From: Isurus oxyrinchus
Lineage: Eukaryota
Reading direction: 5' to 3'
DNA: 64,000 nucleotides
NCBI GenBank assembly: GCA_026770705.1
Contig: JANJGN010000036.1
Coordinates: 3,534,001 to 3,598,000, forward strand
Position numbers and translations under genes: made by a program
The notes under the pieces: model-generated
Databases searched by the model: none
What the model saw: only the letters and a program-made list of their open reading frames with translations
What the model was told of the DNA's origin: nothing
In this document: positions 7,826 to 52,934 of the stretch, one piece after another
How the letters are laid out: each line of letters begins with the position of its first letter
How positions within the stretch are numbered: the stretch's first letter is position 1

Positions 7826-8149
7826 TGTCCCTTTGAGATAAGCTGGTTACAGTAAGTGCCCCAAGACAATTAAAAGCTTCNNNNNNNNNNNNNNNNNNNN
7901 NNNNNNNNNNNNNNNNNNNNNNNNNNNNNNNNNNNNNNNNNNNNNNNNNNNNNNNNNNNNNNNNNNNNNNNNNNNNNNNNNNNNNNNNNNNNNNNNNNNN
8001 NNNNNNNNNNNNNNNNNNNNNNNNNNNNNNNNNNNNNNNNNNNNNNNNNNNNNNNNNNNNNNNNNNNNNNNNNNNNTAGGAAGGCAAATGGATTGAGTGT
8101 CTTTATTGCCAAAGAATTAGAGTACATGAGCAAGGAAATGTTTCATGTG

Positions 8150-8770
8150 GACAATTAGAGTTAGCTTTGCTCTGTATCTAACTCTGTGCTTCTCCTGCCC
8201 TGAGAATGTTTGATGGGAACATTTTACAGGGAGTTTTACCCTGAATCTAACCCCGTGCTGTACCTGTCCTAGGAGTGTTTGATGGGGACAGTGTAGAGGG
8301 AGCTTTACTCTGTATCTAACCCCATGCTGTACCTATCCTGGGAGTGTTTGATGGGGGACAGTGTAGAAGGAGCTTTACTCTGTATCTAACCCCGTGCTGT
8401 ACCTGTCCTGGGAGTGTTGGATGGGGACAGTGTAGAGGGACATTTACTCTGTATCTAAACCCATGCTGTACCTGTCCTGGGAGTGATTGATGGGCACAGT
8501 GTAGAGGGAGCTTTACCCTGTATCTAACCCTGTGCTGTACCTGTCCTGGGAGCGTTTGATGGGGACTGTGTTGAAGGAGCTTTTCTCTGTATCTCACCCC
8601 ATGCTATACCTGACTTGGGTATGCTTGATGACGACTGTGTAGAGGGATATCTACTCTGTATCTAACCCCGTACTGTACCTGTCCTAGGAGTGTTTGATGG
8701 GGACAGCGTAGAGGGATCGTAACTCTGAATCTAACCCTGTACTGTACCTGTCCTGAGAGTGCTTGATTGC
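8150..8770. repeat. 69-bp satellite array
   Basis: About 9 tandem units. Confidence 0.93.
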
Positions 8771-10509: not shown

Positions 10510-10860
10510 GGGACAGTGTAGCGGGAGATTTACTCTGCATCTAACCTGTGCTGTACATGTCTTGGGAATGTTTGATGGTGACAGTGTAGATGGAGCTTTA
10601 CTCTGCATCTAACCCCATGCTGCACCTGTCCTCGGAGTGTTAGATGGAGATAGTGTAGACGGTTCTTTACTCTCTATCTAAACCTGTGCTGTACCTGTCC
10701 TGGGAGTGTTTGATGGGGACAGGGTAGATGGAGCTTTACTCTGTATCTAAACCTGTGCTGTACCTGTCATGTGAGTGTTTGTTGGACGCAGTGTCAATTG
10801 AGCTTTAGTCTGGATCTAACCCCGTGCTGCACCTGTCCTGGGATTGTTTGATGGGGACAA
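10510..10860. repeat. 69-bp satellite array
   Basis: About 5 tandem units. Confidence 0.9.
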
Positions 10861-15000: not shown

Positions 15001-18000
15001 ATCATATACCTAAACCACCACAAACCTCTTGATTAGATTCCAGTCTGTAACTCCATCCCGGGTATCTGTTATCATTTATATCAACCACCCTAAACCCCTC
15101 GATTAGATTCTAGTCTGTAAGTCACTCCCGGTTATCTGTTATCATATATATATAAACCACCCCAAGCCCTTCGATTAGATTCTAGTCTATAACTCACTCC
15201 CGAGTGCCTATTATCCTATATATAAAACACTACAAACACCTCGATTAGATTCCAGTCTGTACCTCACTTCCGGTAATCTGTCATCTTTATGTAAGCCACC
15301 CCGAGCCCGTTGATTAGATTTCAGCCTGTAACACACTCGCGGGTATCTGCTTTACTAAATATAAACCACCACAAACTCCTTGATTAGATTCTGGTCTCTA
15401 ACTCTCTCTCGGGTATCTGTTAACCTATGTATAAACCACACTGTTCCCCTTGATTATATTCAAGATTGTAACTCACTCCCAGGTATCTGTTATCATATAT
15501 ATAAACCACTCTGAGGCCCTCGATTCGATTCCAGTCTGTAACTCAATCCCGCGAGCCTGTTATCCTTTTTATAAACAACACCGAAGCCCTCGATTAGATT
15601 CCAGTCTGTAACTCACTCCCAGGTATCAATTATTCCAAGTATAAATGACGACGAACCCCTCAATTAGCGTCCAGCCTGTAATTCACTCCCGGGTATTTGT
15701 TATCCTATATAAACTGCCCTGAACCCCACGGTTATATTCCAGCCTGTAACTCACTCCTGGGTATCTGTTATTCGATACAAAAACCAATCTAAACCATTCA
15801 ATTAGATTCTAGTCTGTAACTCACTCCCGGGAATCTGGTATTCGACAAAAACACCACTCCAAATCCCTCGATTAGATTGCATTCTGTAACACACTCCTGG
15901 GTAATTGTTATTCTGTATATAACCGCCCCCCCCCCCCACCCCGCCCCCCCCCCCCCCCAAACCCCTGAATTAGATTCCAGTCTGTAGCTCACTGCCGGGT
16001 ATTTGTGATTCCAAATATAAACCACAGAACCCTACAATTAGATTCCAGTCTGTAACTCACATCCAGATATCTGTTATTCTTTATATAAACCACTTCGAAA
16101 CCCTCAATTAGATTCCAGCCTGTAACTCACTCCCGGGTATCTGCTTTAAAATATATATAAACTACCATAAACCCCTTGAATAGATTCCGGTCTGTAGCTC
16201 ACTCCAGGGTATCTGTTCACCTATATATAAACCAATCTGATCCCCTCGATTATATTCCAGCCTGTAACTCACTCCCGTGTATCTGTTATCATATACGTAA
16301 ACCACCACAAACCTATAGATTAGATTCCGGTCTGTAACTCCATCCCGGGTATCTGTTATCATATGTATATAAACCACCCTAAACCCCTCGATTAGATTCT
16401 AGTCTGTAAGTCACTCCCGGTTATCTGTTATCCTATATATATATACCAGTACGAGCCTCTCGATTAGATTCCAGTCTGTAACTCACTCCCAGGTGCCTAT
16501 TATCCTCCATATAAAACATTACAAACACGTCGATTAGATTCCAGTCTGTACCCCACTTCCAGGAATCTGTCATCCATATATAAGCCACCCCGAGCACCAT
16601 GATTAGATTTCAGCCTGTAACCCACTCGCGGGTATCTGCTTTACTATATATAAACCACCACAAACTCCTTGATTAGATTCTGGTCTCTAACTCACTCCCA
16701 GGTATCTGTTAACCTATATATAAACCACACTGATCCCCTCGATTATATTCAAGACTGTAACTCACTCCCAGGTATCTGTTATCCTATATATAAACCACCC
16801 CGAGCCCCTCGATTCGATTCCAGTCTGTAACTCACTCCCAGGTATCGATTATTCCAAGTATAAACGATGACGAACCCCTCAATTAGCGTCCAGCCTGTAA
16901 TTCACTCCCGGGTATTTGTTATCCTATATATAAACCGCCCTGAACCCCATGATTAAATTCCAGCCTGTAACTCACTCCCAGTATCTGTTATCATATGTAT
17001 AAACCACTACAAAACCCAATATTAGATTCTGGTCAGTAACTCCCTCCTGGGTGCCTGTTATCCTGGACATAAACCACACTGATCCACTCAATTAGATTCC
17101 AGTCTGTACCTCACTCCTGGGAATCTGTCATTCCATATATGAGCCCCCCGAACCCCTCGATTAGATTCCAGTCTGTAACTCACTCCCTGGTATCTGTGGT
17201 TCGACATATAAACCCCCAAACCCCTCGATTAGATTCCATTCTATAACTCACTGCCGAGTATCTGTGATTCTAAATATAAACTCCCAAAGCCCTCAATTAG
17301 TTTCCAGTCTGTTACTCAAATCCAGATATCTGTTATTCTTTATATAAAACACCCCAAACCCCTCAATTGGATTCCAACCTGTATCTCACTCCCGGGTACT
17401 GTTATCCCCCATATAAACCAAACCAAACCCCGCGATTAGACTCCAGTCTGTAACTCACACCCGGGCAACTGTTAATCTTTATATATTATATACATATGAT
17501 TTATATATAAACCACCCTGAACCACTCAGTTAAACACCAGCCTGAAACTCACTACCGGATATCTGTTATCCTATATATAAACCACCCCAAAACATTTGAT
17601 TAGATTCCGGTCTGTAACTCACTCCCGCTTTATCTGTTATCCCATATATAAACCACCACGGACCCCTCGATTAGATTCCAGTCTGTACCTCACCCTTGGA
17701 AGTCTGTCATTCTATATATAAGCCCCCCCCCCCCCCCCCCCCCCCCCCCGAGCCACTTGATTAGATTGCACTCTATAACTCACTCCCAGGAATCTATTAT
17801 TCTTTATATATTGTATACATTTGATGTATATATAAACCACACAGAACACCTCAATTAAATTCCATCCTGTAAATCACTCCCGGTATCTGTTAATCTGTAG
17901 CTAAACTATCCTGAACACCTCGAATAGATACTGGTCTGTAACTCACACCTGGGTATCTGTTATCCTATATATAAACTACCCCAAACACACAATTAGATTC

Positions 18001-21000
18001 CAGTCTGTAACTCAATCCCAGGTATCTGTTATTCTATATATAAAACAACTCGAACCTCTTGATTACGTCCCGGTCTGTAACTCACTCCCAGGTATCTGTT
18101 ATCCTATATATAAGCCCCCTGAATCCCTCGAATTGATTCCAGTCTGTAAATCACTCCCGGGTGCCTGTTTTCCTATAAAAATCCCACCACGAATATTTCA
18201 ATTAGATTCCCATCTGTACCTCACTCCCGGGTATCTGTTATCCTAAGTATAAACCACCCCGAAACCCTTGATTAGATTCCAGTCTGTAACTCAGTCCCAG
18301 GTTTCTGTTAATCTGTATAAAAACTATCCTGAACACCTGGATGAGATTCCAGTCTGTAACTCACTCCCGGGTATCTGTTATTCTATATTTAAACCACCCT
18401 GAAGCCCTCGATTAGATTCCAGACTTTAATTCACTCCCGGGTATCTGTTATTCGATAAAAAAAAAACACTCTAAACCCCTCAATTTGATTCCAGGCTGTA
18501 ACTCACTCCTGGGTGCCTGTTATCCTAAATATAAACCACCCCGAAACCCTTGATTAGATTCCAGTCTGTAACTCAGTCCCGGGTATCTGTTATCCTATAT
18601 ATAAACCACCACGAACACCTCGATTAGAGTCCAGTCTGTACCTCTCTCCCGGGTATCTCTTATTCTACATATAAAACAACCCGAACCTCTTGATTGCATC
18701 CCGGTCTGTAACTCACTCCCGGGTATCTGTTATCGTATATATAAGCCCTCTGAATCCCTCGAACTGATTCCAGTCTGTAACTCACTCCCGGGTGCCTGTT
18801 ATCCTAAATATAAACCACCCCGAAACCCTTGATTAGATTCCAGTCTGCAACTCAGTCCCGGGTCTCTGTTAATCTGTATAAAAACTTTTCTGAACACCTG
18901 GACGAAATTCCAGTCTGTAACTCACTCCTGGGTATCTGTTATTCGATATAAAAACCACTCTAAACCCCTTGATTTGATTCCAGTCTGTAGCTCACTCCTG
19001 GATATCTGTTATCCTATATATAAACCACCCCAAACACACAATTAGATTCCAGTCTTCAACTCACTCCCGGGTATCTGTTAATCTGTATATAAACTATCCT
19101 GAACACCTGGACGAGAATCCAGTCTATAACTCACTGCAGGGTATCTCTTATGCTATATATAAAACAACCCGAACCTCTTGATTACATCCTGGTCTTTTAC
19201 TCACTCCTGGGTATCTGTTATCCTATATATAAGCCCTCTGAACCCCTGTCTGTACCTCACTCTCTGGAATATGTCATTCCATATATAAGACCCCAGAGAC
19301 ACTCGATTAGATTCCAGTCTGTAACTCACTCCCGGGCAACTGTTAATCTTCATATATTATATGATGTGTATATAAACATATATACATATAGATGTATATG
19401 ATGCATATAAACATATATATGTATATAACTCACTCCAGGGTATCTGTAAATCTTTATATAATCTATCCCGAACAACTGGAATAGATTCAAGTCTGTAACT
19501 CACTCCCGCGTATCTGTAATTCTATATATAAACCACGCCAAACCCCTTGATAAGATTGCAGTCTGTAACTCACTCCTCGGTATCTGTTATTCTATATATA
19601 ACCCCCCCTCCAACCCCCAAACCCCTTGATTAGATTCCAGTCTGTAACTCACTTCCAGGCATCTGTTTTACTATACATAAATCACCACAAACCCCTTGAT
19701 TAGATTCCAGTCTGTAACTCACTGCCGGGTATCTGTGATCCAAAATATAAACCACAGAACCCCTGTATTAGATTCAATTTCGTAACTCACATTCAGATAT
19801 CTGTTATTCTATATATAAACCACCTCGAAACCCTCAAATATATTCCTGCCTGTAATTCACTCCCAGGTATCTGTTATCCTGTATTTAAATCATCCTGAAC
19901 CCCTTGATTAGATTCCAGCCTGTAACTCATTTCCGGGTCTCTGTTTTACTATGTATAAACCACCACAAACTCCTTGATTAGATTCCATTCTGTAACTCAG
20001 TCCAGGGTATCTGTTAACCTATATACAGAACCACCTTGATCCCCTCGATTAGATTGCAGTCTGTAACTCTCAGGTATTCTATGTTTAAATTACCATGAAC
20101 CCCTCCATTGGATTCCAGCCTGTACCTCACTCCCACGTACCTCTTATCCTATACATAAGCTACCCTGAACCCCTCGATTAGATTCCAGGCTGTAATTCAC
20201 TCTCGGGTATTTGTTATCTTATATATAAATCACCCTGAACCCCTCAATTAGATTCCAGCCTGTAACTCACTCCCGGGTATCTGTTATTCTATATATAATC
20301 CACCACAAACCCCTTGATTAGATTCCTTTCTGTAACTCAGTCCCGGGTATCTGTTAACTGATATATAAACCACCCTGATCCCCTCAATTAGATTCAAGTC
20401 TGTAACTCATTCCCTGGTATCCGTTATTCTAAATATAACCACCTCAAACCCCTTGATTAGATTCTGGTCTGTAATTCACTCCCGGGTATCGGTTATTCTA
20501 TATATAAACCACTCCGAACCCTTCTATTAGATTCTAGTCTGTAACTCACTCTTGGGTATCTGTTATTCTATATATCAACCCCCGCACCCCTCGATTAGAT
20601 TCCAGTTTAAACTCACTCCCTGGTATCGGTTATTCTATATATAAGCCCACCGAGCCACTCGATTAGATTCCAGTCTGTATCTCACTCCCAGGTGTCTGCT
20701 ATCCTAAATATAACCTGCCCCGAACCCCTCGATTAGATTCTATGCAGTAATTCACTCCTGAGTATCTGTTATTCTATATAAAAACCACTCCAAACCATTC
20801 GATTAGATTCCAGTCTGTAACTCACTCCCTCGTATCTGTTATTCTATACATTAACCACCCCAAACCCCTCAATTAGATTCCAGTCTGTAACTCACTCCCG
20901 GGTATCTGTTATCCTATATATAAAACACAACAATCCTCTTGATTACACTCTGGTCTGTAACTCACTCCCTGCTTTCTGTTATCCTATATATAAACCACCC

Positions 21001-22033
21001 AGAACCCCTTGAATAGATTCCGGTCTGTAACCCTGGGTATCGGATATTCTATGTATAAACAACCATGAACCCCTCCATTAGATTCCAGCCTCTAACTAAC
21101 TCCCGGGTATCTGTAATTCGATATATAAGCCACCCCAAAACCCTCCATTAGATTCCAGTCTATAACTCACTCCCAGCTAACTGTTCTTGCATATATAAAA
21201 CACACCAAACTCCTCGATTAGATTCCAGTCTGTAACTTTCACCTAGACATCTGTTATTCTGTATATTTGATGTACATATGATTCACATATAAACCACCCC
21301 GAAACCCTCTATTAGATTCCAGTCTGTAACTCACTCCCGGGTATCGGTTATTCTATATATAAACCACTCCGAACCCCTTGATTAGATTCCAGTTTGTAAC
21401 TCACTACCAGGCATCTGTTATTCTTTATATATTATATACATATGATGTAAATATAAACCACCTTGAATACATCAATTAAATTCCAGCCTGTAACTCAATC
21501 TAGGGTATCTGTTAATCTGTATATAAACTATTCTGAACACCTGGACTAGATGCCGGTCTGTAACTCACTCCTGGGTATCTATTATTCTATATATAAATCA
21601 CCCTGAACCCCTCGATTAGATTCCAGTCTGTAACTCACTCCTGGTTATCTGTTATTCTATATATAAACCACCCCGAAGCCCTCGATTAGATTCTAGTCTG
21701 TAACTCACTCCTGGGTATTTGTTATTCTATATATAAACCACACCGAAGCCCTCGATTAGATTCTAGTCTGTAACTTAATCCTGGGTATCTGTTATTCGAT
21801 ACAAAAACCACTCCAAGCCCTTTGATTAGCTTCCAATTTGTAACTCACTCCTGGGTATCTGTTATCTTATATATAAAACTTCCCAAACCATTCAATTAGA
21901 TTGTAGTCTGTAACTCACTTACGTGTTTATGTTATTCTTTATATAAACTATCCCTAACTCCTCAATTTGATTCCAGTCTGTAACGCACTCCCGGGTATCT
22001 GTTATCCTATATATAAACCACCCCGAACCCCTT
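12050..22033. repeat. 70-bp tandem satellite, ~140 units (CCCCTCGATTAGATTCCAGTCTGTAACTCACTCCCGGGTATCTGTTATTCTATATATAAACCACCCCGAA)
   Basis: Continuous tandem array. The 70-bp period is confirmed on the clean copies at 48721, 48791 and 48861. Confidence 0.97.
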
Positions 22034-22167
22034 TGTGGAAGAATAAAATACATCTACAGGACAACTAAATGTTAAACGGTTAAAATCATAGTGGAATACT
22101 ACAGCACAGTTCCCTATTTTTTTCTCGCAGGCACAGGAAAGGAGGAAAGGAGTATCATAAACAAACT

Positions 22168-22399
22168 AAAAACAAAAAACTACAGATGCTGGAAATCCAG
22201 AACAAAAACAGAATTACCTGGAAAAACTCAGCAGGTCTGGCAGCATTGACGGAGTAGAAAATAGTTGGCGTTTTGAGTCCTCATGACCCTTCAACAGACT
22301 CTGTTGAAGGGTCATGAGGACTCAAAACGTCAACTCTTTTCTTCTCCGCCGATGCTGCCAGACCTGCTGAGTTTTTCCAGGTAATTCTGGTTTTGTTTT
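22168..22399. mobile_element. Fold-back Penelope-like insertion, copy B (nested in the LTR)
   Basis: Inverted arms of ~100 bp meeting near 22299. Direct repeat GTATCATAAACAA at 22152-22164 and 22400-22412. Confidence 0.75.
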
Positions 22400-22550
22400 G
22401 TATCATAAACAAGCTGCCTGGAATCCTTGATGCAAGGGTGGGATGTCTGCCCCAACACAAAGGGACAGGATCAAGCAATTGTCATTTGTGCTTTAACATT
22501 TTCACCCCCTAGCACTATAGATAAGGTCAAGCAGGGTTATCTATTCTCTG

Positions 22551-22761
22551 CAACAAAAACAGAATTACCTGGAAAAACTCAGCAGGTCTGGCAGCATCGG
22601 CGGAGAAGAAAAGAGTTGACGTTTCGAGTCCTCATGACCCTTCGACAGAACTTGCTGAGTTCCTGCTGTGTTTTTCCAGGTAATTCTGTTTTTGTTTTGG
22701 ATTTCCAGCATCCGCAGTTTTTTTTTTTTTTTTTGTTTTTTTTTTTGTTTTTTTTTTGTTT
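22551..22761. mobile_element. Fold-back Penelope-like insertion, copy C (nested in the LTR)
   Basis: Inverted arms with an expanded T-rich end. Direct repeat TTATCTATTCTCTG at 22537-22550 and 22762-22775. Confidence 0.75.
22614..22652 (-). ncRNA. Variant minimal type I hammerhead-ribozyme-like motif
   Basis: Minus strand reads AGTT-CTGTCGA-A-GGGTC-ATGAG-GACTC-GAAA-C-GTC-AACT: helix I AGTT/AACT, CUGAnGA core with A6->U, helix II GGGUC/GACUC, GAAA, palindromic ACGU helix III, GUC site. An identical motif lies at 26941-26979 (-). Confidence 0.55.
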
Positions 22762-23090
22762 TTATCTATTCTCTGTCTCACTTCTTATCGCCAGATGGGC
22801 TCCTCCTAAGATCCTGGGTAGTTGTATGCTAGAATAGATCAATTGTATACTGCATGCCGTAAACAACGATTCTCAATGTAATTACTTATTGAAGGTTAGA
22901 TGGTTTTATCACATTCAGGCTCTTGGATATGTACAACGTTTACTATAACTATGTGTGCACTCTGATGCTTCTTCAGAGTGTCAGCTAGCTCCACTGTAAG
23001 CTGCTGGGCTGTCCGTGATATCACGGTTTTAATAAAAGGCTTCCGAGACAAATCTCCTGGGTCTGAGTGTTCACTCTGATTTCCACGACA

Positions 23091-24732
23091 CCCTTGATTA
23101 GATGCCGGTCTGTAGCTCACTCTCCGGCATCTGTTATCCTATATAGAAGCCTCCTTCAACCCCTCGATTAGATTCCAGCCTGTACCTCAAACCCGGGTAT
23201 CTGTTATCCTATATATAAAACACGATGATCCCCTTGATTACACTCTGGTCTGTAACTCACTCCCTGCTTTCTGTTATCCTATACATAAACCACCCAGAAC
23301 CCCTTGAATAGATTCCGGCCTGTAACTCTGGGTATCGGATATTCTATATATAAACAACCATGAACCCCTCCATTAGATTCCAGCCTCTAACTAACCCCCG
23401 GGTATCTGTAATTTGATATATAAGCCACCCCGAAACCCTCCATTACATTCCAGTCTATAACTCAATACCGGGCATCTGTTATTCTTTATATATTATATAC
23501 ATATGATGTATATATAAACCACCTTGAATACATTAATTAAATTCCAGCCTGTAACTCACTCCAGGGCATCTGTTAATCTGTATATAAACTATTCTAAACA
23601 CCTGGTCTAGATACCAGTCTGTAACCCACTCCTGGGTATCTGTTATTCTATATATAAATCACCCCGAAGCCCTCGATTAGATTCTAGTTTATAACTTAAT
23701 CACGGGTATCTGTTATTCTATATATAAACCACCCCGAACCCCTTGTTTAGAGTCCAGTCTGTAACTCACTCCTGGGTATCTGTTATTCTTTAGATAAACT
23801 ATCCCAAACTCCTCAATTTGATTCCAATCTGTAACTCACTCCCGGCTATCTGTTATCCTATATATAAACCCCCCCGATCCCCTTGATTAGATGCCAGTCT
23901 GTAGCTCACTCTCGGGCATCTATTATCCTATATATAATTGTCATTCAACCCCTCGATCAGATTCCAGTCTGTACCTCAATCCCGGGTGCCTGTTATCCTA
24001 TTCTTAAACCACCACGAATGCCTCGATTAGATTCCAGTCTGTAACTCACTCCTGGGCAACTGTTATTCTTTATATATTGTATACACATAATGTTTATATA
24101 AACCACCATGAACACCTCAATTAAATTCCAGCCTGTAACTCACTCCCAGATCCCTGTTAACCTGCATATAAACCATCCTGAACACCTCGACTAGAATCCA
24201 GTCTGTAACTCACCCCCGGGTATCTGTTATTCGATATAAAAACCACTTCAATCCCCTCGATTAGATTGCAGTCTGCAACTCACTCCCGGGTATCTGTTAC
24301 CCTACACGATTAGATTGCAGTCTGTAACTCACTCCCTCGTATCTGTTATTCTATACATAAACCATCACGAACCCCTCACTTAGATTCCAGGCCGTAACTC
24401 CTGGGTATCTGTTATCCTATATATAAACCACCCAGAAACCCTTGAATAGAGTCTGGTCTGTAACTCTGGGTATCGGATATTCTATGTATAAACAACGATG
24501 AACCCTTCCATTAGATTCCAACCTCTAACTCACTCCCGGGCATCTGTTATCGTATATATAAACCACCACAAACCCTTTGATTAGATACCAGTCTGTCACC
24601 CCCTCCTGGATATCTGTTATTATATATATAAACTACCCTGAAACCCTCGATTAGGTTCCAATCTGTTCCTCACTCCCCGAAATCTGTTATTCTATAAATA
24701 AAACACCCCTAAAACCTCGATTAGATTCCAGC
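23091..24732. repeat. 70-bp satellite, continuation (~23 units)
   Basis: Same consensus as 12050-22033. Confidence 0.96.
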
Positions 24733-24754: not shown

Positions 24755-24875
24755 AAGGGGTCTCCCTCCATTTTAATGATGGGAAGGGATCTCCCTCTAA
24801 TTTTAAAGATGGGGAAGGATCTCCCTCCATTTTAAAGATGGGGACAGATCTCGCTCCAATTTAAAGATGGAGAAG
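24755..24875. repeat. 30-bp minisatellite (~4 units)
   Basis: Same unit as 178-680, with the same upstream flank (TTCCAGC...CACATCACATGT). Confidence 0.9.
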
Positions 24876-29679: not shown

Positions 29680-30155
29680 ACTGAATCCCTCGATTAGTAT
29701 CCAGTCCGTAACTCACTCCCGGGTATCTTCTATTCTTTATTTAAACCACCAGCAAAACCTTTGATTAGATTCCAGGCTGTAACTCACTCCCGGGTATCCG
29801 TTATTCTATATATAAACCACCCCGAGCCCCTCGATTAGATTCCAGTCTGTAACTCACTTCTGGGTATCTGTTATTCTATGTATACACCAGCCAGAACCCA
29901 TCTAGCTGCACCTGTTCTGGTAGTGTTTGATGTGGACAGTGTAGAGGGAGATTTACTCTGTATCTAACCCCGTGCTGCACCTGTCCTGGAGTGTTTGATG
30001 GGGACAGTGTAGAGGGAGCTTTACTCAGTATCTAACCCCGTACTGCACCTGTCCTGGGGTGTTTGATGGAGACAGTGTAGAGGGAGCTTTACTCTGTATC
30101 TATACCCATGCTGTAACTGTCCTGGGAGTGTTTGATGGGGACAGTGTAGAAGGAA
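29680..30155. repeat. Three units of the 70-bp satellite abutting ~4 units of the 69-bp satellite
   Basis: The consensus switches near 29900. Confidence 0.9.
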
Positions 30156-30659
30156 AAACTTCTAAACACAAAGGGTTGTGGATGTTTGGAACTGTCCTCA
30201 CCAATTGTAGTTAATGCTGAGTCAATTTTTAATTTTCAAATCTATGATAGACCTGATCTGAAGCCTTTCATAAATCCAAATATGCCTCTATTCCTCTGTC
30301 CTTGCTCAATTTGTAGATGAGTGTCTGTGTATGTGTGTGCCTCTTTCTGTGTGTTTCTGTATCNNNNNNNNNNNNNNNNNNNNNNNNNNNNNNNNNNNNN
30401 NNNNNNNNNNNNNNNNNNNNNNNNNNNNNNNNNNNNNNNNNNNNNNNNNNNNNNNNNNNNNNNNNNNNNNNNNNNNNNNNNNNNNNNNNNNNNNNNNNNN
30501 NNNNNNNNNNNNNNNNNNNNNNNNNNNNNNNTCTCTCCCGCACTCTGGAAATCTTCACATACATCATTTGGCCATTTTAAGTTGGCTCATGGTGGCCATT
30601 TTTACACCAAAATTCTGTTTTACCACAGCAAGTCTTCCTTAATATTGTAGATCAATTGG

Positions 30660-31810
30660 ACAATGTAAAGGGAGCTTGAGGCTCTGTGTAACCCTGTATT
30701 GTACCTGTTCTCCAAGTGTCTGATGGAAAGTGAAGAGGAAGGTTTACTCCGCCTCTTACATGTGCTGCACCTGTCATGGGCATCTTTGAAAGGGAGATTG
30801 TAGAGGGAGCTTTACTCTGTACTGTACCTGTCCTGTGAGTGTTTGATAGGGACAGTGTAGAAGGAGCCTTACTCTGTATTGTCCCTGCCCTGCAAGTGTT
30901 TGAGAGGAGATTGTGAAGAGGAATTTACTCTGTATTTGAAGGGACAGTGCAGAGGGAGCTTCATCTTCTATATTACCTTGTGTTGTTTCTGTACTGCAAG
31001 TGTCTGATGGGAGAGTGGAAAGGAAGATTTACCCAGTTTCTCACGTGTCCTGGGTATGTATGAATGGGAGATTGTAGAGGAAGCTTTATTCTGTACTGTA
31101 CCTGTCCTGGGAGTGTTTGAAAGGAGATTATACAGGGAATTTACTTTGTTACTAACCATGTGCTGTTCCTGCCCTGGGAGTGATTGTTGGGACGTTATAG
31201 AGGGAGATTTACTCTGTACATAACCATGTGCTGTAACTCTCCAGGGACTGATTATGTGTGACCTTCTAAAGGGAACTTTAACCAGTACCTAACCCCGTAC
31301 TATATCAGCCTGGGGAGCATTTGAGGATACAGTATAGAGAGAATTTTACTCCGTATCCAACAGCGTGCTGTGCCTGACATGTCCTGGGAGTGTTTGATAT
31401 GACTGTTTAGAAGGAGTTAACTCTGTATTTAACCCCATGCTGTAACTGTGCTGGGAGTGTTTTATGGGGTTGGTGTAGAGGGAGCTCTACTCTGTATCAA
31501 ACCCTGTGCTGTACCTGTCCTGGGAGTGTTTGATGGGTCAGCGCGGAGGTAGTTTTGTTCAGTATCTAACCCTGTGCAGTGCCAGTCCTGGGAGTTCTTG
31601 ATGGGAACAGTGTAGAGAGAGGTTACTCTGTATCCAGCCCCATGCTGTACCTGTCCTGGGAGTGTTTGATGGGGACGGTGTAGAGGGATATTAACTCTGT
31701 ATCTAACCCTGTGCTGTACCTGTCTTTGGAGTGTTTGATGGAGACAGCGAAAGGGAGCTTTAAATTGTATTTAACCCCGTGCTGTATCATCTCTGGGGGT
31801 ATTTGATGGC
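30660..31810. repeat. Degenerate 69-bp satellite array
   Basis: Recurring GGGAGTGTTTGATGGG / TGTAGAGGGAG / TTTACTCTGTA motifs. Confidence 0.85.
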
Positions 31811-33445
31811 AACATTCTCATCCAACACGAAAGCATTCCACAGAGCAGGGCCAGAAATTGAACATGAGTTTCCTTGTTTGATTCTCCTGGGTCTGTTCTG
31901 ATTCTCTGATAGATTCCTGGTGCTTATACTCCACATGAGCAGTTGTCCTAATCCTGTGTACTTGTCCTGCTCCCAAACACGGTATCTGACTCCAATAAGG
32001 CAAGCAATACAGGAGCGTCTCAGTGAGTGAGACAGGTGAGTCTTGAGCCTGACCCGGGTGTATGTGAGTGACCCAGGTTAATCCGACACTCCAGGGACAG
32101 TTTAGACAGTTTGAGTGCAATGCAGCTTTGCCAGAATGAGACCTGGATTCCAAGGGTTAAATGACAAAGTGAGATTGCACATACTCGGGTTGTATTCCCT
32201 GAAATTTAGCAGCATCAGTGGGGATTTGATCAAGTTGTCACAGTATGAGCCCTTTTCCTGTGTAACAACCTTTCGTCAGACACCTTATGGAATCATTCTT
32301 GAAAATCCAAGTATCCTTCCATCACCAGCTCTCTGTCTCTCGCTCACCCTCTCGGGCAGTATCTCTCTCACCGTCTCTCTGTCTGATGTTTAAAAATGTT
32401 CTCTCACCTCATTTTGGATGTGTGGGAATAACAATTGTGAAACAATGTTCTAAATCTGCTTTAATTGTATTTTCTGCGCTTGTTCGCAACTTGTCAGAGA
32501 GAGAGAGAAAAAGAGTGAGAGAGATAGAGAAGGGGAGAGGAAGACAGAGAGGGAAGGAGAGATTGAGTTAGAAATGGAGAGGGAGAGAGAAGGGGATGAA
32601 TGTGAGGCGTGGGGTGAGGGGGGAGAGAAAGAGAGAAGTATCGAGAGAGAGAGAAGGAAATATAGACGGACGGAGAGTGCGGAGAAACTTCCATGGAAAT
32701 CCCATAGTCTGATCAGTGATCTCCTTCAGAATTACAATCACATCAGTCAAACAGGATTTCCCTTTAACAAAGCTGTACTGGGGTCCACTGCTCAGTTCAC
32801 ATTGCTGAAGACTCCATCCACCCTATCCTGAATGACAGATTCTAAAAACTCCCCCACAACTGGCAATACACTGAGAGGTCCGTGGTTACCCGGTTGTCCT
32901 TTCCCCCGCCCCTCTTAAACCTTTCAGGATAGGAAAGAATGTGTATAGTTCCCGACAACTCATTACAAAAAGCATCGATTGGAAGGGGCGCAGCACAGAT
33001 TAACCATCGTGTTACTGGGAGTCCATGGTTAAAATTACGAGGGGGAGTTACATAGTTTGGCTTCCCTGAACTGGGGATTATTAAGGGAGGATATGATAGG
33101 GATTTTGAGCATTTGGGAAAAGTAAAGGGGTAAATAGAGAGAAAATACTCTCTTGATAAGGGGGACGTCCAAAACCAGGAGACATGTCTTTAAAATGAAT
33201 AAATCCAATGGGGAATTCAGGAGAAACTTATTAAACCAGGGAGTCATTACAATGTGGAATTCGCTCCCCAGGGAGCGGTTGAGGCCGATCGCACACTCAC
33301 ATATTTTTCGATTTCTCTTTTATGTAATTCTATGTATTATTGCCCCATTCTACAAGCAGAGAGAATTTACACATAGGATACTGGGGAAAATTCGACAGAA
33401 TATTTTGAATCACAAAGTCGGACACTCATTTAACTCGCTTCCGAT

Positions 33446-35266: not shown

Positions 35267-35303
35267 TCCGAACATTCAAGGTGGTCCCACCTCCGAAGAT
35301 CCA
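35267..35303 (-). CDS. Ig light-chain J segment, WIFGGGTTLNVR(S)
   Basis: FGxG motif; phase-1 donor A|GTAAGT at 35266, in frame with the C exon. Confidence 0.95.
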
Positions 35304-35528: not shown

Positions 35529-35538
35529 ATGCAAATTA
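35529..35538 (-). promoter_or_regulatory. Second octamer/decamer (TAATTTGCAT) in the V-J spacer
   Basis: ATGCAAAT at 35529-35536, same orientation as the V promoter octamer. Confidence 0.5.
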
Positions 35539-35661: not shown

Positions 35662-35689
35662 AGTTTTTGTATGGCTCTGTCTCACTGTG
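35662..35689 (-). promoter_or_regulatory. V recombination signal sequence (12-RSS)
   Basis: CACAGTG (35689-35683), 12-bp spacer, ACAAAAACT (35670-35662). Confidence 0.97.
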
Positions 35690-36015
35690 CACGCCTGCTG
35701 AGCTATCCCAGACCTGACAGTAATAGACGGCGGAGTCACCGGACTCCAGGCTTCCAATGGTCAGAATGAAATTGTTCCTGGAGGTGTCTCTCGAAGGTTG
35801 AAAACGGTCGGTGAAGCCGGTGCCTCGAGAGACGCTGCCATCTTTGCTGTGCTTTAGCACCCAGACGGGAGCTTCACCGGGTCGCTGCCGGTACCAGTAC
35901 ACATAAGCGCTTCCCACATTCCCGTTCTGCATCCCGCACTGTAATCGGGCGGTCTGACCAGCGGAGACTGGGTCGGAAATTGGGACTTGATTGAGGACGA
36001 GAACCGCCAGGACTC
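35690..36015 (-). CDS. Ig light-chain V exon, unrearranged (type I / NS5 / sigma-cart-like)
   Basis: Acceptor TTGAAG|GA. (G)VLAVLVLNQVPISDPVSAGQTARLQCGMQNGNVGSAYVYWYRQRPGEAPVWVL...DRFQPSRD...DSAVYYCQVWDSSAGV has the V-set Cys, WYRQ and DxAxYYC motifs and abuts a 12-RSS. Isotype is assigned from recalled similarity to shark type I chains. Confidence 0.96.
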
Positions 36016-36161
36016 CTTCAATTAAAAAGAGACAAAAGAAAACATTCAATAACCTGCAGCAAATGTGTCGTTAATGCATCAATAAACATGGGTCTTTACC
36101 GGACCGTTCTCGGTGTTTAACGGATTCTCTGTAATCAAAACCCGCTCCTCCAATATCTGAC

Positions 36162-36210
36162 CTGTTAAATGGAGCAGCAGAGCCCACACGAGATGCAGCA
36201 CTGGAGCCAT
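36162..36210 (-). CDS. Ig light-chain leader exon, MAPVLHLVWALLLHLT(G)
   Basis: ATG at 36210, hydrophobic signal peptide, phase-1 donor AG|GTCAGA, 146-bp intron in frame with V. Confidence 0.92.
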
Positions 36211-36292: not shown

Positions 36293-36338
36293 TTATACCC
36301 GACACTCCAGCTCCATTTATTAAGCAGAATGCAAATGA
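36293..36338 (-). promoter_or_regulatory. VL promoter: decamer/octamer TCATTTGCAT plus TATA-like elements
   Basis: ATTTGCAT (light-chain orientation) at 36336-36329, TTAATAAAT at 36323-36315, TATAA at 36297-36293; the octamer lies ~120 bp upstream of the ATG. Confidence 0.88.
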
Positions 36339-41359: not shown

Positions 41360-43675
41360 TTCAGAGGCTATTATGAGTGTCCATGTGCACAAATCACAGG
41401 CAGTTAACATTCAGTTCAGCAAGACTTTGGCAAATACTATGTCAGTCTTTATTTGCAAGGGCATTGGAATGTAAAAGTAAGGAAGTATTACTGCAATTGT
41501 ACAGGGCTGTGTTCAGATCATATCTGGGCACTTTCAAGGTGGAAGGTGTGTCAAGTGGAGTACAAAAAGGAACAGTGCAAAGGCCTCAACTAATTACAAA
41601 CTCTATTCATGACTTAGATGAAGAGACCGAGAATAATATATCTAAGTTTGATGACAATGTAAAGCTTTGTCGGAATGCAAACTGTGAGAAGGACACAATG
41701 AGGCTGCAAAGAGCTATAATCAGTTTAAGTAAGTAGTCAACAAGGTGGCTGAAGGGACATAATATGGGGAAGTGTGACGTTATTCACATTGGTTGCAAAT
41801 ATAGACAAAAAGGCACATTCCTTTGCTTCTCCTCGTCCAAGGGACTGAGATCAATCTATTTTTGGACTCTAGGGGAATCAAGGGATCTGGGGACAGTGCG
41901 GGAAAGTGGAGCTGAGGTAGGAGATCAGAAGAGAACTTACTGAATGGTAGACTAGGCTATAAAGGCTGAAAGGCCTCCTCCTGTTCCTGTTCCTTCTGTG
42001 GAGACAGAACCTAACATGTCAAATGGTTTTGGAAAAATTGGATGTCAGGCAGGGGTGGAGTTAAGTCAGAGCAATACATTTTATTCATGTTTGGATCACG
42101 CTGCTGGTTTAATTTATGTGTGAGTTGTGCTCGGTTTGCAGTGAGCTGTTTGGCTGGTGTGTGCTACATGTTATCAGATCGATGTTAATGGAGGGCCAAT
42201 CACTCATGCTGCATCTTGCAACCCTCTTTTCCAGAGATCAGACACCAGCAACAATTGGGGTCTCTCTTCCTTGGACAGGATTTCCACACTAACTCAGTGG
42301 CTTTTGATGGGATGTTGTACGGTGATCAGTTGTTCTGAGGGTGGATGTGGCATTATCTACGCAACCTGCAGGTGATGACGGCCTGAGCCATTCAGCCCCT
42401 TGATCTGTGTTATCCCTCTGAAGTAGCTCCCCCCACCCCACAGCCTTTAGTCTAAACTCCCCTCAGCTCTTAACCTGTTCTTTTCGAAATACTGATCAAT
42501 TTCCTTTTAAGAACTATTCCCAATTCTGTTCCTAGAGAGCAAGTCCCTGACCAATAACCAGTTGCCTAAAAGAAATTATAATCTCCTCTGCCTCGATTAT
42601 TTTTGGCAATGATTTTAACTCAATAGTGGCCGATGTAACCATCTCTGAAGAGAGCTTGGATGGAGGGGGGCGGTGATGATAAAAAGCTCTGACTGAAAGT
42701 AGGCAGTAATGAGGAGATAAAGAGTCTGCAAAGGGAGCTAAACTGCTCAGTTAATTGGGTGAGAAAGTGGCAGATTGAGTGTAATGTTATGAAATTTGAC
42801 GTCTTGCTTGGGGGTGGGAAGAATAGATACACAGGGTCTTTGTAAAAGTTGAGGGACTTGAAAATTCTGGTACTCAGAGGGATTGGATGCCCTTGTAAAC
42901 TTAACGCAGGAAACGAACAATCAGGGACAGCAAGCAGATTAGGGAGGTAAATAGTTTGTTCAGGCTCATTGCAAGGAGGGTTGGAGTTTAAGGGGAAGGG
43001 GAATCTTAGTGTAATTGTAGAATGTGTTACTGAGACAGTACCTGGAATAATGTGTGCAGTTTTGCTCTACTTACCTTAGAAAGGATGCACTTGCCTGAGA
43101 GGGAGTGCAATGCGTGTTCACTGGATTGATTCCGTGGATGAGAGGATTGTCATATGATGAGATAGAATAGAATGGTTCTAAATCCTCAGGAGTTTAGAAG
43201 AAATATTGGTGATCTCATTGAAATGTGTAAAATTCTCGAAGAGTTTGACTGGGCAGATGTTGAGAGGCTGTTCCAGCCCCATTATCCCCAGCCCCACAAA
43301 CCGGTCTCCCTGCCTTGGCTGGTGTGTTCAGGACACAGGATCACAGTCTCAGAATTATGAGTCAGCTACATAGGGCTGGGTTATGGAGAAAATTCTTCAC
43401 TCAGTGTTGTGAAGCTTTGGAATTCTCCATCTCTGGGAGCTGTGAGTGCTCAGTCACTGAGTATATCCAATGTAGAGATACGAGAATATAGAGTTGAGTG
43501 ACTGCGTATATTCAAAGCTGAGATCAATCGATTAATGCACACTAAGGGAGTTAAGGGATGTGGAGATAAGGCAGGGAGGTGGCGTTGAATTAGACGATCG
43601 CCCATAATCTTATTGAATGGTGGAGCAGGCGCAAAGGGCCAAAAAGCCTCCTCCTGCTCTAGTTCCTGATGTTCT
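41360..43675 (+). mobile_element. Cluster of degenerate CR1 fragments (about 41360-41995 and 42620-43675)
   Basis: SKFDDNVKL / GVQKG remnants and CR1-type 3' tails (GGCCTCCTCCTG...). Confidence 0.7.
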
Positions 43676-43879
43676 TTTGTGTGAATGGTAGTGTGGGGTA
43701 TACAATAAGTATTGATGATTTAAAGACTGCTTTAGGCCATCAAACATTTATCAGTCCAGTTGAACCCACGTCAATGATGATTCACATTTTCCAACAACCA
43801 GGCCCCAGTCTGTAGCTGAAAGCGGCACTGAAAGCACCTCAGCCCCTCTCCATCCACTCACACACAACGTGGCTAGTGC

Positions 43880-44140
43880 TTCAAATGTCTTATTTTAGCT
43901 CCCGATACCGAACGGTTGTTGTTTTTGGCCTGTTTGTGAAGTAGTGCAGGTGTTGTGGTCATTCACCTCAGGGCAAAGGGGGAGAGCGTCACAGGAGGAG
44001 GAACTGAAACCTTTCTGTTCACTGGGCGATTAGCAGCCAAGGGTGACAGCATCTGTCCCCAGCTTCCACTCTCTGAAATTTCACAGAAGCGGCTGTGGTT
44101 TCACACAGGAAAAGGACAGAAATCTCAGAGGCACATTTGA
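43880..44140. promoter_or_regulatory. Candidate B-cell Ig enhancer
   Basis: MEF2-like CTTATTTTAG 43889; E2A site TGCAGGTGT 43945; RUNX TGTGGT 43954 and TGTGGTTT 44094; half-CRE CGTCA 43987; ETS-IRF composite GAGGAACTGAAA 43998-44009; E-boxes CATCTG 44050, CAAATG 43882 and CATTTG 44134. Confidence 0.6.
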
Positions 44141-44429
44141 ACCCGATATTCTTGCACACCTTGCACTTTACAGAAACTGACAACCCAACGTGTGCCGGGC
44201 CGCACAGAAAACAACCAGCAAAACTCCTATTATTTATCCCCTGGACTGTCTCACTCTTCACTTCTCGACTCTGTTTCCAAACAAACCTGCCTCATAACCT
44301 AACTCGCACCAAGTATCATTCACTCATCAAACCACCCCAGCCTGTGGTCCCTGCTCTGCTTTGGCTCGCAGTTATGCCATGCCTTGATTTTAAACTGTTC
44401 ATCTTGCCGCTTTGAAATCCCACTAGTCC

Positions 44430-45390
44430 CTCTCCCCTCACTCTCTCTGTAAAAGTGTTCCAGCCCCTACACACCACCCTGATCCTGTAACCTCCTCATG
44501 CCCCCATACACCTCCCTATCTCTGTGACCTGATCAAGCACTGCAGCCCTTCCTATCTCTGTAACTTTATTCAGCCTCTCGCACACCCCCTATCTCTGTAA
44601 CATCCTCCAGACCTACATCACTCCCTATCTCTGTGAAATATTCAAACCACTACAACCCTCACTATCTCTGTAACTTTATCCAGNNNNNNNNNNNNNNNNN
44701 NNNNNNNNNNNNNNNNNNNNNNNNNNNNNNNNNNNNNNNNNNNNNNNNNNNNNNNNNNNNNNNNNNNNNNNNNNNNNNNNNNNNNNNNNNNNNNNNNNNN
44801 NNNNNNNNNNNNNNNNNNNNNNCGTTCTCCCAAACCTATATCACTCCCTATCTCTTTGGGCTTCCTCCATTTCCTAAAATACTCCCTCTCCTTGTAACCA
44901 CCTCAGAGCAGTACACTCCTCAGAATCTCTGGAATCCTCAAGACACCAACTGTTTCTGTAAACACCTTCAGTCCTTACAACCCTCCATATACCTGTAAAT
45001 TCCAATAGCCCCTACACCACTCCCTATCTCTGTAATGCACTCCAGTGCCAAAAACCCTCCCTATCTCTATAAACTGATGCAGCAGCTACAATGCTCCCTA
45101 TCTCTGTGACTTGATTCAGCCACTGCAGCCCTCTTTATCTCTGTAACTTTCTTCAGACCCTACATCACTCCCTAACTCTGTGAATTCCTCCATCCCCCAC
45201 AATCCTGCCTGCTAATTCTTTAACTTTCTCCAGCCCACACCCCCCAAACACCCCGGTCTCAGTATCCCTGCTCCAGCCCCTACACACCTCCATCTCTGTC
45301 TAACCTACTCGAACCCCTCTAATGCTCCTTATTCCAGTACCCTCTGCAACCAACACAACTTTCCCTCTGCATGTAACCTTCTCCAGCCAC
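44430..45390. repeat. ~37-bp minisatellite (CCCTCCCTATCTCTGTAACCTCCTCCAGCCCTACAAC-like); resumes at 47355-47530 after the LINE
   Basis: Recurring CCCTATCTCTGTAAC motif. Confidence 0.85.
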
Positions 45391-45394
45391 TGAA

Positions 45395-47350
45395 ACAATA
45401 CATATTGGCCAGAAAAAAGCAACAGACCTGAGGATTGGGAGCAGTTTAGAATTCAGCAATGGAGGACCAAATGATTGATTAAGAAGGGGAAAATACATTA
45501 CAAGAGTAAGCTTGCAGGGAACATAAAATCTGCCTGTAAAAGTTTCTAGAGGTATGTGTAGAGAAAAAGATTGGTGAAGACAAATGTAGGTCCCTTACAG
45601 TCAGAAACAGGGGAATTCATAATGGGGAACAAAGAAATGGCTGACCAACTAAATACATACTTTGGTTCTGTCTTCACAAAGGAGGGCACTAATAACATAT
45701 CAGAAATGGTGGGGAACACAGGGTTTAGTGAGAGGGAGGAACTGAAAGAAATCAGTATTAGTAGGGAAATGTTGTTGGGGAAATTGATGGGATTGAAGGC
45801 CGATAAATCCCCGGCACCTGATAATCTACATCCCGGAGTAATTAAGGAAGTGTCCCAAGAAATAGTGGCTACATTGATGGATGGTCATCTTATGAGATTC
45901 TATAGACTCTGGAACAGTTCCTACAGGTTGGAGGGTAGTTAATGTAACTCCACTATTTAAAAAGGGAGGCAGAGAGAAAACAGGAATTATAGACGAGTCC
46001 GCCTGACGTCGGTAGTGGGGAAAATTCTAGAGTCCATTATAAAAGATTTAATAGCTGAACACGTGGAAAGCAGTGGCAGAATCGGACAGGGTCAGCATGG
46101 ATTTATGAAAGGGAAATCATGCTTGACAAATCTACTGGAATTTTTCAAGGATGTAACTAGTGGAGTTGATGAGGGGGAGCCAGTGGATGTGGTTTATTTG
46201 GACTTTCATAAGGCTTTCGACAAAGTCCCACATAAGAGATTAGTGTGTAAAATTAAAGCACATGGAATTCGGGTAGTGTATTGAGATGGATAGAAAAATG
46301 TTTGGCAGACAGGAAACAAAGAGTGGGAATAAACGGGTAATTTTCCGAATGGCAGGCAGTGACTAGTGGGGTACCGCAGGGATCGGTGCTGGGACCCCAG
46401 TTATTCACAATATATATTAATGAGTTAGATGAGGGAATTCAATGCAATATTTCCCAATTTGCAGATGACACAAAGCTGGGTGGGAAGGTGAGCTGTGAGG
46501 AGGATGCAGAGATGTTTCAGTGTGATTTGGACAAGCTGAGTGAGTGGGCAAATGTATGACAGATGCAGTGTAATGTGGATAAATGTGAGATTATCCATTT
46601 TGGTAGCAAAAACATGAAGGCAGATAATTATCTGAATACCGAGAAATTCGGAGCGGAGAATGTGCATCGAGACCTGGGTGTCCTTGTACTCCAGTCGCTG
46701 AAGGTAAGCATGCAGGTGTAGCAGGCGCTAAAGAAGGCAAATGGTATGTTGGCTTTCACAGCCAGAGGATTCGAGTACAGGAACAGGGATGTCTTGCTGC
46801 AATTGCACAAGACCTTGGTGAGACCACACCTGGAATATTGTGGGCAGTTTTGGCCTCCTTATCTGAAAAGGATGTACTTCCAATAGAGGGAGTGCAGCAA
46901 ATGTTTACCCAACTGATTCCTGGAATGGCGGGTCTGCCAGGAGAGATTGATTTAATTAATTAATTTATTTGCTGGAGTTCAGGAGAATGAAGGAGGATTT
47001 CATAGAAACCTATAAAATTCTAACAGGACTAGAAAGCGGCAATGTCCAGAATCAGGAGTCACAGTCTGAGGACATGGGGTAGACCATTTAGGCTGAGATG
47101 AGGACAAATGCCTTCACCTAGAGAGTGGTGATCCTGTGGAGTTCGTTACCACAGAAAATAGATGAGACGAAAAAATTATATATTTTCAAGAAAAATGTAG
47201 ATATTGCTCTTGGGGTGAAAGGGATCAAAGGATATGGGGAGAAAGCGGGAGCAGGCTATTGAGTTGAATGATCAGTTATGAATAGTGGAGCAGGCTTGAA
47301 GGGCAGAATGGCCTACTGCTGCTCCTAGCTTTTATGTTTCTATGATTATA
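45395..47350 (+). mobile_element. 5'-truncated CR1 LINE, RT domain to 3' tail, disrupted
   Basis: ORFs 45571, 46015 and 46359 give KSPAPD, QHGFMKGKSCLTNL, VYLDFHKAFDKVPH, GVPQGSVLGP and FADDTK, with stops and frameshifts. Tail GAATGGCCTACTGCTGCTCC...TATGTTTCTATG. Confidence 0.93.
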
Positions 47351-48039: not shown

Positions 48040-48330
48040 GTTGGGGTGTTTGTGACACACTGGTTAGTGCCCCTACCTCTGAGCCAGTCGCTGCAAATTC
48101 GGGTCCTACTTCAGGACTTGATGGCCATGGAAGGTGTGTCCATAACGTGGCCAAACTGGTTTATTATGAGCCAGGAAATCCTTCCAATGTGTCAGATGGC
48201 AGGTGGTAAGAGTGGGAGAGACTCCTGGTCAGCCAGAACCTGCAGAAGGCAATGGGAAAGCACTGCAGCACCTTGTCAAGCATAACCATGGAGCAAGACA
48301 TGGAAGGGAAAGACCGTCTTAGGACAGGGT
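48040..48330 (+). mobile_element. Probable degenerate tRNA-derived SINE with an RTE-like segment
   Basis: A-box-like TGGTTAGTG and B-box-like ATTCGGGTCC head. GAAGGCAATGGGAAAGCACTGCAG at ~48245 resembles the RTE/BovB motif GAAGGCAATGGCAACCCACTCCAG. Confidence 0.4.
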
Positions 48331-48719
48331 ACCTGAAGAAAGAGAGATTTAAGATCATGAGGATTCTGGACACTCAGAGACGGTGAGAAACTATTTGTAT
48401 GTTTTGAGTATAACAACATTTATAGCATCTGATCAGTCAATATAGGCTGCAAAATATATTCTATGAATCCGGGCTTGTAATATCCAGACAAGCAGACACA
48501 CACAAACTCAGGTATACAAATACAGACAGACAGACACAGAAACATGAGAGAATAATTCCCATATGTCACATATCTGTTATCCGTCCTTAGGTCTGGAGAT
48601 GAAAACTCTCCTCAGTAATCCAGGTGTTCTCACAGCAAAACACTTGCAGCAAGATTTCCTTACTCTTAAACTCCAACCCCTTTGCAATGAAGGCCAATCA
48701 TTTACCTTTCTCTTGGTTA

Positions 48720-49240
48720 CCCCTCGATTAGATTCCAGTCTGTAACTCACTTCCGGGTACCTGTTATTCTATATATTAACCATCCCGAACCCCTTGATTA
48801 GATTCCAGTCTGTAACTCACTCCCGGGTACCTGTTATTCTATATATTAACCATCCCGAACCCCTTGATTAGATTCCAGTCTGTAACTCACTCCTGGGTAT
48901 CTGTTATTCTATATGTAAACCACCTGGATGAGATTCCAGCACTTCCACATCACAAGTTGAGGAAGGGATCTCCCTCCATTTTAATGATGGAGAAGGGATC
49001 TCGCTCTAATTTTAAGGTTGAGAAAGGATCTCCTTGCATTTTAAAGATGGGGATGGGATCTCCCACAATTTTCAAAATGGAGGTGGGACCTCTCTTCAAT
49101 TTTAAAGATGGAGAAGGGACCTCCATCCATTTTAAAGATGGAGATGGGATTTCCCTCCATTTTAAAGATGTAAGACCGATCTCGCTCCATTTTAATGATG
49201 GAGAAGGGATCTCCCTGCAGTTTAAAGATGGGAATGGATA
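48720..49240. repeat. Three units of the 70-bp satellite followed by ~9 units of the 30-bp minisatellite
   Basis: Same junction as 24650-24875. Confidence 0.93.
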
Positions 49241-52409: not shown

Positions 52410-52580
52410 CAGGGATCTCCCTCCATTTTGAAGATGGGGAAGGGATCTCCCTCCATTTAAAAGATGGGGAAGGGATCTCCCTCCATTTAAAAGATGGGGA
52501 AGGGATCTTCTCCATTTTAAAGATGGAAAATGGATCTCCCTCCGTTTTAAAGATGGAGAAGGTATCTGCCTCCATTTGAA
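52410..52580. repeat. 30-bp minisatellite (~5-6 units) followed by a CT/CA tract to ~53420
   Basis: AGGGATCTCC at 52411, 52441 and 52471. Confidence 0.92.
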
Positions 52581-52934
52581 ATATTGAGGGTCGTTTTCGC
52601 TCCATTTCATCAGTTTTCTCTCTCCCTGCCACTTTTGCCTTTCCCCGACTGTCTCTCTGATTCTCTCTCGCTCTCCATGTCTATTTCGGACACTCACTCC
52701 TCTCTCTCTGTCTCTCTCCCTCACCACATCCATTTTTCTTTCACTCAATTGCCTCTCTCTATCTCTTTCTTTTGCCCTCTCTCTCTTTCTCTCACATCCC
52801 ATTTCCCTGTCACTAAATCCCACTCTCTCTCTTGCCCCATTTCTCTGCCTCTCATCCTCTCTCTGTCACTGCCTCTCACTCTATCTCTCTGTCACTCTCT
52901 GACCGTCTGTCTATTCTGCCCCTGAGACACCAAT

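Follow-up and report, generated by a model that had tools for sequence, protein, structure and literature searches.

A candidate B-lineage enhancer with a PU.1-IRF composite site and flanking E-boxes upstream of a shark immunoglobulin light-chain cluster

A 260-bp island of low-copy DNA carries a predicted PU.1-IRF composite site framed by two E2A-type E-boxes and lies 5' of an apparently intact V-J-C light-chain cluster. We regard this island as a testable candidate enhancer on the basis of the composite site and its flanking E-boxes, which recall the light-chain enhancers of mammals. Our favoured reading, to which we assign a probability of roughly 0.42, is that the island may act as a lymphoid (B-lineage) enhancer module and form part of the unit repeated in this family of light-chain clusters. 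It is only slightly ahead of the view that the motifs have come together by chance. The sites, their order, the low copy number of the island and the neighbouring V-J-C gene can be read directly from the DNA. All positions refer to the window, i.e. the whole 64-kb stretch of DNA that was analysed, and the features are collected in Table 1.

Table 1. Positions of the candidate enhancer island, its motifs, its flanks and the neighbouring light-chain gene in the window
Feature	Position	Strand	Remarks
C exon with stop codon	33596..33913	-	Pfam C1-set E = 3.6e-16
J segment (WIFGGGTTLNV)	35271..35303	-	spacer of preceding signal about 23 nt
V recombination signal CACAGTG, 12-nt spacer, nonamer ACAAAAACT	35662..35689	-	read off sequence
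V exon	35693..36013	-	Pfam V-set E = 2.8e-16; 5' boundary approximate
Leader exon (MAPVLHLVWALLLHLTG)	36160..36210	-	ATG at 36210
Octamer ATTTGCAT of V promoter	36329..36336	-	gene-strand reading
CR1-type LINE 3' end, left flank	43000..43683	+	LINE C-terminal motif in translation around 43400-43660
Low-copy, non-repetitive stretch around island	43684..44253	.	from contig depth and lack of another copy in the window
Candidate enhancer island	43880..44140	+	all nine reported strings found
CTTATTTTAG, reported as MEF2-like	43889..43898	+	present; does not fit YTAWWWWTAR
TGCAGGTGT	starts 43945	+	contains E-box CAGGTG
E2A-type E-box CAGGTG	43947..43952	+	start 51 bp 5' of PU.1 half-site start
RUNX core TGTGGT, copy 1	43954..43959	+	
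CCTCAGGG, reported as EBF-like	43966..43973	+	present; does not fit EBF consensus CCCNNGGGA
Half-CRE CGTCA, extended CGTCACA	43987..43993	+	equals mouse/human kappa 3' enhancer string
Predicted PU.1-IRF composite GAGGAACTGAAAC (Ets-IRF composite element, GGAANNGAAA)	43998..44010	+	predicted from sequence
E-box CATCTG, extended CATCTGT	44050..44056	+	start 52 bp 3' of PU.1 site start; equals kappa 3' E-box string
Palindrome TGAAATTTCA	44074..44083	+	
RUNX site TGTGGTTT, copy 2	44094..44101	+	
Minisatellite, 36/37-bp and 110-bp units, right flank	44435..45181	.	N run inside at 44684-44822

Results

The island is a low-copy stretch between repeats

A preliminary description of this DNA had placed a non-repetitive island between CR1 debris and a minisatellite. 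Both flanks agree with this picture, and the low-copy stretch extends beyond the island on either side to a total of about 570 bp. Copy number was judged from Logan contigs of four runs of two related organisms, here called A and B, which were placed on 43000-44683 with a threshold of 80% likeness. Contig depth over the low-copy stretch was in the tens to hundreds (about 80-275 for X2 and 33-82 for X6), whereas the flanks reached 10^4-10^5, with maxima of 337,000 in the CR1 tail and 220,000 in the minisatellite. The CR1 tail shows loose contig ends, where other copies run on into the tail repeat. Thus, the island is not a high-copy repeat. The possibility of such a repeat, raised in the preliminary description, does not hold against an island depth of 33-510 at the same threshold, compared with up to 337,000 in the flanks. 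With no second copy found within the 64-kb window, an origin as a high-copy interspersed repeat (CR1 LINE, SINE or satellite) was rejected. The k-mer depths suggest that each genome has a few copies, with an estimate of roughly four haploid units for organism B and a higher one for organism A.

Other functional classes were considered for the island itself. Its GC content is 0.487, and because the observed/expected ratio of CpG is only 0.39, it was dismissed as a CpG island. Two reading frames run across the island, and since Pfam returned no match for either, a coding exon was likewise rejected. In 42500-45500, the only Rfam and tRNA hits were miRNA-like, below threshold and inside the LINE.

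Directly to the left of the island, a segment of 133 bp (43716-43848) recurs at 82% identity midway through otherwise unrelated contigs of 863-963 nt in both organisms, and may be part of an old repeat of low copy number. It is conceivable that the island, too, is what remains of an old low-copy transposon after decay, or some other element that has escaped annotation, for instance the place where a non-coding transcript begins. This adjoining copy and the repeat-dense character of the whole region fit such an origin. Against it, the 82% copy stops short of the island, no extra copy covers 43880-44140 at a likeness of at least 80%, and the Rfam, tRNA and Pfam searches yielded nothing credible in or on it. 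We therefore consider this origin very improbable.

Several tandem arrays were observed elsewhere in the window. A 70-bp satellite, whose consensus includes GATTAGATTCCAGTCTGTAACTCACTCCCGGGTATCTG, forms an array of roughly 12 kb at 12274-24731 with a GC skew that is strongly negative and higher-order periods of 140-349 bp; the unit recurs in a short array at 48719-48922. Arrays of a 68/69-bp unit (GACAGTGTAGAGGGAG...CTGTCCTGGGAGTGTTTGATGG) occur at 2388-2894, 6256-6898, 8139-8767, 10512-10859 and 30003-31814. A 30-bp minisatellite is present on both sides of the light-chain cluster (182-678, 24757-24795, 48962-49239 and 52411-52581). The NF-kB consensus is matched within its unit by GGGATCTCCC or GGGATTTCCC, and these arrays inflate the NF-kB background in motif scans.

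Motif content of the island

All nine motif strings named in the preliminary description were recovered on the plus strand between 43889 and 44101, each at the place assigned to it. Two of the labels had to be withdrawn: CTTATTTTAG, proposed as MEF2-like, does not conform to YTAWWWWTAR, and CCTCAGGG, proposed as EBF-like, does not conform to the EBF consensus. Neither an NF-kB (GGGRNWYYCC) nor a MEF2 (YTAWWWWTAR) consensus was found in 43880-44140. The 12-mer GAGGAACTGAAA at 43998 matches GGAANNGAAA with a GAGGAA half of the PU.1 type. Three GGAANNGAAA sites are present in the 64-kb window, namely that of the island, one in a LINE reading frame and a third at 48302. The LINE site, at 45735 and thus 1.7 kb away, repeats the exact 12-mer, and we take this recurrence to be accidental.

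The neighbouring light-chain gene

On the minus strand, the window contains what looks like an intact V-J-C light-chain cluster with an octamer-bearing promoter. Pfam was run on the exons singly. With the leader ATG on the minus strand at 36210, the island lies 7,670 bp 5' of the leader, in line with the distance of about 7.6 kb from V given in the preliminary description. Thus, it is located neither 3' of the C exon nor in the J-C intron, and the intervening 7.6 kb include LINE-derived fragments. No other V or C exon was found within the window, including the part upstream of the island. A homology search with the V reading frame, under a length filter that excludes light chains of full length, gave no protein at E <= 1e-10, and metagenome collections, which contain no shark DNA, had no match to the V protein or to a 26-nt pattern from the island.

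The order of recombination signals, with a spacer of 12 nt at V and about 23 nt at J, suggests that the cluster is probably not of the lambda type. This order does not separate kappa, sigma and sigma-cart, the type I class to which the preliminary description had referred, and the domain assignment extends to V-set and C1-set only. Two further groups of motifs were observed near the gene. Besides the promoter octamer, the gene strand has a second copy of ATTTGCAT at 35529-35536, where it falls within the V-J spacer and is flanked by the two recombination signals. The other group, about 300 bp beyond the 3' end of the C exon, comprises an EBF consensus in perfect palindromic form (TCCCCAGGGA, 33265-33275) and an ISRE-like GAAATCGAAA (33306-33315). 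Both are probably transposon-derived because they lie inside a CR1 fragment, as recognized by a frame with the WNSLP motif.

Likeness to known light-chain enhancers

In Figure S5B of PMC3972084 (machine-read), the core of the mouse and human kappa 3' enhancer consists of CCGTCACAC, about 27 nt of intervening sequence, the composite site, a further stretch of about 14 nt and CACATCTGTG. The composite site reads GAGGAACTGAAAC in mouse and GGGGAACTGAAAC in human in the same figure. As far as this figure goes, its element order thus bears out the order of CRE, composite and CATCTG box given in the preliminary description. The island was compared with these rows by short motif strings rather than by a computed alignment. 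On this scale, CGTCACA, the composite and CATCTGT follow one another in the same order on one strand, sharing 7, 13 and 7 nt with the strings of the figure. The mouse composite as printed there is identical to that of the island over 13 nt. In contrast, the spacings deviate. The CRE and the composite are separated by 6 nt in the island compared with about 27 in the mouse row, and the composite and the E-box by 40 compared with about 14. The sequence between the motifs is without visible similarity to the kappa 3' core. Moreover, the kappa 3' enhancer is positioned 3' of C, whereas the island is 5' of V, and the half-CRE of the kappa 3'-like trio is absent in the related organism B.

A second point of comparison is provided by the lambda enhancers. 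According to the account in PMC3972084, those of human, mouse and chicken have an upstream E-box and sites for NF-kB, MEF2 and PU.1-IRF4 in common, and the mammalian ones bear an extra E-box about 50 bp downstream of the PU.1 site. The same source assigns E-box, CBF and PU.1 sites to the chicken 3'Core, a hypermutation-targeting element. Measured against this outline, the island has the upstream E-box, the PU.1-IRF composite and a downstream E-box at 52 bp, close to the mammalian offset. It also possesses RUNX/CBF, E-box and PU.1 sites, as does the 3'Core. Unlike the lambda enhancers as outlined, the island has neither an NF-kB nor a MEF2 consensus between E-box and composite, and its position upstream of V differs as well.

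The resemblance to the kappa 3' and lambda cores is real for motif identity, motif order and the E-box offsets of roughly 50 bp. Outside birds and mammals, the IgL enhancer of Atlantic cod and the catfish IgH 3' enhancer belong to cluster-type or compact loci, are rich in E-boxes and lie outside the J-C intron. An E-box-rich element outside the J-C intron, in a cluster-type or compact locus, would be the feature that the island shares with these teleost enhancers; this likeness concerns general layout rather than sequence.

Excess over chance

Whether the motif content exceeds chance depends on the question asked. In a generic test, every 260-bp window was scored with a fixed vocabulary of 13-14 textbook B-lineage motifs. 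The island contains 6 of 14 motif types, a value equalled by 0.35% of such windows, and three regions tie. When motifs were weighted by rarity, the island ranked fifth among regions, with four others scoring as high or higher. The generic score of the island was reached by 73.5% of 200 first-order Markov sequences of 64 kb. Thus, the generic density of B-cell motif types at the island is ordinary.

The specific arrangement gave a different answer. A GGAANNGAAA site flanked on either side by an E2A-type box no more than about 60 bp away occurred in 24 of 600 random 64-kb sequences (4%). When a half-CRE within 45 bp was added to the same flanked composite, none of the 600 sequences qualified, and the analytic value is 1.8e-3 per 64 kb. 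For the three exact strings of the preliminary description in order, a first-order Markov model predicts 2.3e-6 occurrences per 20 kb or 0.46 per 4 Gb. Hence there is no excess over chance in the generic count and a moderate one in the specific arrangement. The small probabilities are optimistic because the grammar was chosen after the sequence had been seen and because many candidate enhancers were flagged in the scan.

These results bear directly on the closest rival of the enhancer reading. The island might be an ordinary low-copy spacer that was duplicated together with the light-chain cluster and has no regulatory role, its likeness to the kappa 3' core being a post hoc impression. We hold this to be nearly as probable as the enhancer reading itself. 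A generic score within chance, the failure of two of the nine motifs to fit their consensus and the occurrence of the same 12-mer in a LINE reading frame 1.7 kb away are all expected of a chance cluster. The spacings unlike those of the mouse core point the same way, and passive duplication would account for a depth of a few units. What speaks against chance is the rarity of the specific arrangement in random sequence, at 4% and at 0 of 600 with the half-CRE, together with the low expectation for the ordered triple (2.3e-6 per 20 kb). The island also stands beside a gene of the type that, as described in PMC3972084, uses this grammar in birds and mammals.

Variation in related organisms

None of the runs contained the exact sequence of the window, the best share of sampled words being 0.63, and none of the runs containing the stretch is recorded as RNA. 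In organism A, the differences listed for the island are at 43913, 43919 and 44026, with a 1-nt deletion at 43971 in the reported EBF-like string. In organism B they are at 43904, 43913, 43919, 43965, 43981 and 43989. The last of these, a T to A exchange, converts the half-CRE from CGTCA to CGACA in all depth seen. From 44001 on, organism B has two versions, one equal to the window up to 44140 and another about 90% alike. In the more distant version, the palindrome is broken by T to A at 44080, the second RUNX site is destroyed by GG to TA at 44097-44098, and 6 nt are deleted at 44063-44069.

In the contigs of both organisms, CAGGTG, the first TGTGGT and CATCTG are untouched by the differences listed. 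Within the composite 12-mer, nine of the twelve bases (44001-44009) are unchanged, and 44001-44030 is identical in all organism B contigs. The first three bases (43998-44000) are without a listed difference; they are not strictly proven unchanged because two differences of the contig 43857-44030 are unlisted. These statements on motif retention cover the listed differences, outside of which stand 196 less well supported ones.

The share of positions listed as variable is about 5% for the island, compared with about 10% to its right (44141-44280) and about 3% to its left (43684-43879). Conservation of the island does not clearly exceed that of its flanks, and no clear signal of constraint emerges at so small a divergence. 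In organism B, the two versions appear to share 43857-44030 exactly before they part, a pattern that looks like a recombinant or converted mosaic rather than the outcome of selection. A chance cluster is again compatible with these data, since close relatives or paralogues vary at the half-CRE, at the palindrome and at the second RUNX site, without an excess of conservation in the island relative to the flanks.

A separate observation concerns the relationship of the copies. At 43700, 44147, 44155, 44189, 44193 and 44207, all contigs of A and B concur on a reading other than that of the window. Positions 43913 and 43919 show the same split in those runs whose contigs cover them. Either the window carries a paralogue of the copies in these contigs, or its species is an outgroup to A and B.

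Discussion

Factor binding, the target gene and all activity of the island are predictions from its motifs, and the following model is to be read in this sense. On the enhancer reading, a Spi-family Ets factor (PU.1 or SpiB) on GAGGAA would recruit IRF4 or IRF8 to the adjoining GAAA within 43998-44009. The two E-boxes, CAGGTG on the upstream side at 51 bp and CATCTG on the downstream side at 52 bp, would be occupied by E2A-type proteins, and RUNX/CBF would bind to TGTGGT. Once assembled, the complex would reach the V promoter and its octamer, 7.7 kb distant, by looping. It would raise transcription there and open the V-J region to recombination, and it might also help to target hypermutation.

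Several lines of evidence were counted in favour of the enhancer reading. The ordered core is similar to those of kappa and lambda enhancers and is rare in random sequence (4% and 0/600). In addition, copy number is low, the two E-boxes and the first RUNX site are free of listed differences, and an apparently intact V-J-C gene adjoins. Counted against it were the ordinary motif density and the 12-mer in the LINE frame at 45735, as well as the loss of half-CRE, palindrome and second RUNX site combined with the lack of clear constraint. The spacings that differ from the mouse core, the missing NF-kB and MEF2 sites, the position 5' of V and the fact that no run with the stretch is on record as RNA were placed on the same side. 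If real, the island would belong to the already known type of light-chain enhancer built on PU.1-IRF sites and E-boxes, in an unusual placement.

The island might instead be a genuine haematopoietic enhancer that serves another target or another lineage. Myeloid and dendritic cells, too, typically rely on PU.1-IRF8 and RUNX sites, so the motif set does not point to B cells alone, and 7.6 kb with LINE-derived fragments separate the island from V. On the other hand, no gene was found within the window nearer to the island than the light-chain cluster, and the E2A-type boxes suggest lymphoid use. An assignment to a different gene or cell type therefore seems to us quite unlikely.

A more far-reaching version of the enhancer reading would make the core homologous to that of the mammalian kappa 3' (or lambda) enhancer. 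It would have been kept since the ancestor of jawed vertebrates and copied with every shark light-chain cluster, possibly with a function in targeting hypermutation. Such common descent is unlikely in our judgement.

A search of the literature found no characterised enhancer of a cluster-type shark immunoglobulin locus, which is not proof that there is none. A defined element of 260 bp with a mammalian-type core would make the activation, exclusion and hypermutation of hundreds of small independent clusters directly testable. Should the island turn out to be a chance cluster, the loss would amount to one candidate. If it proves to be conserved, this enhancer logic would date to the origin of jawed vertebrates.
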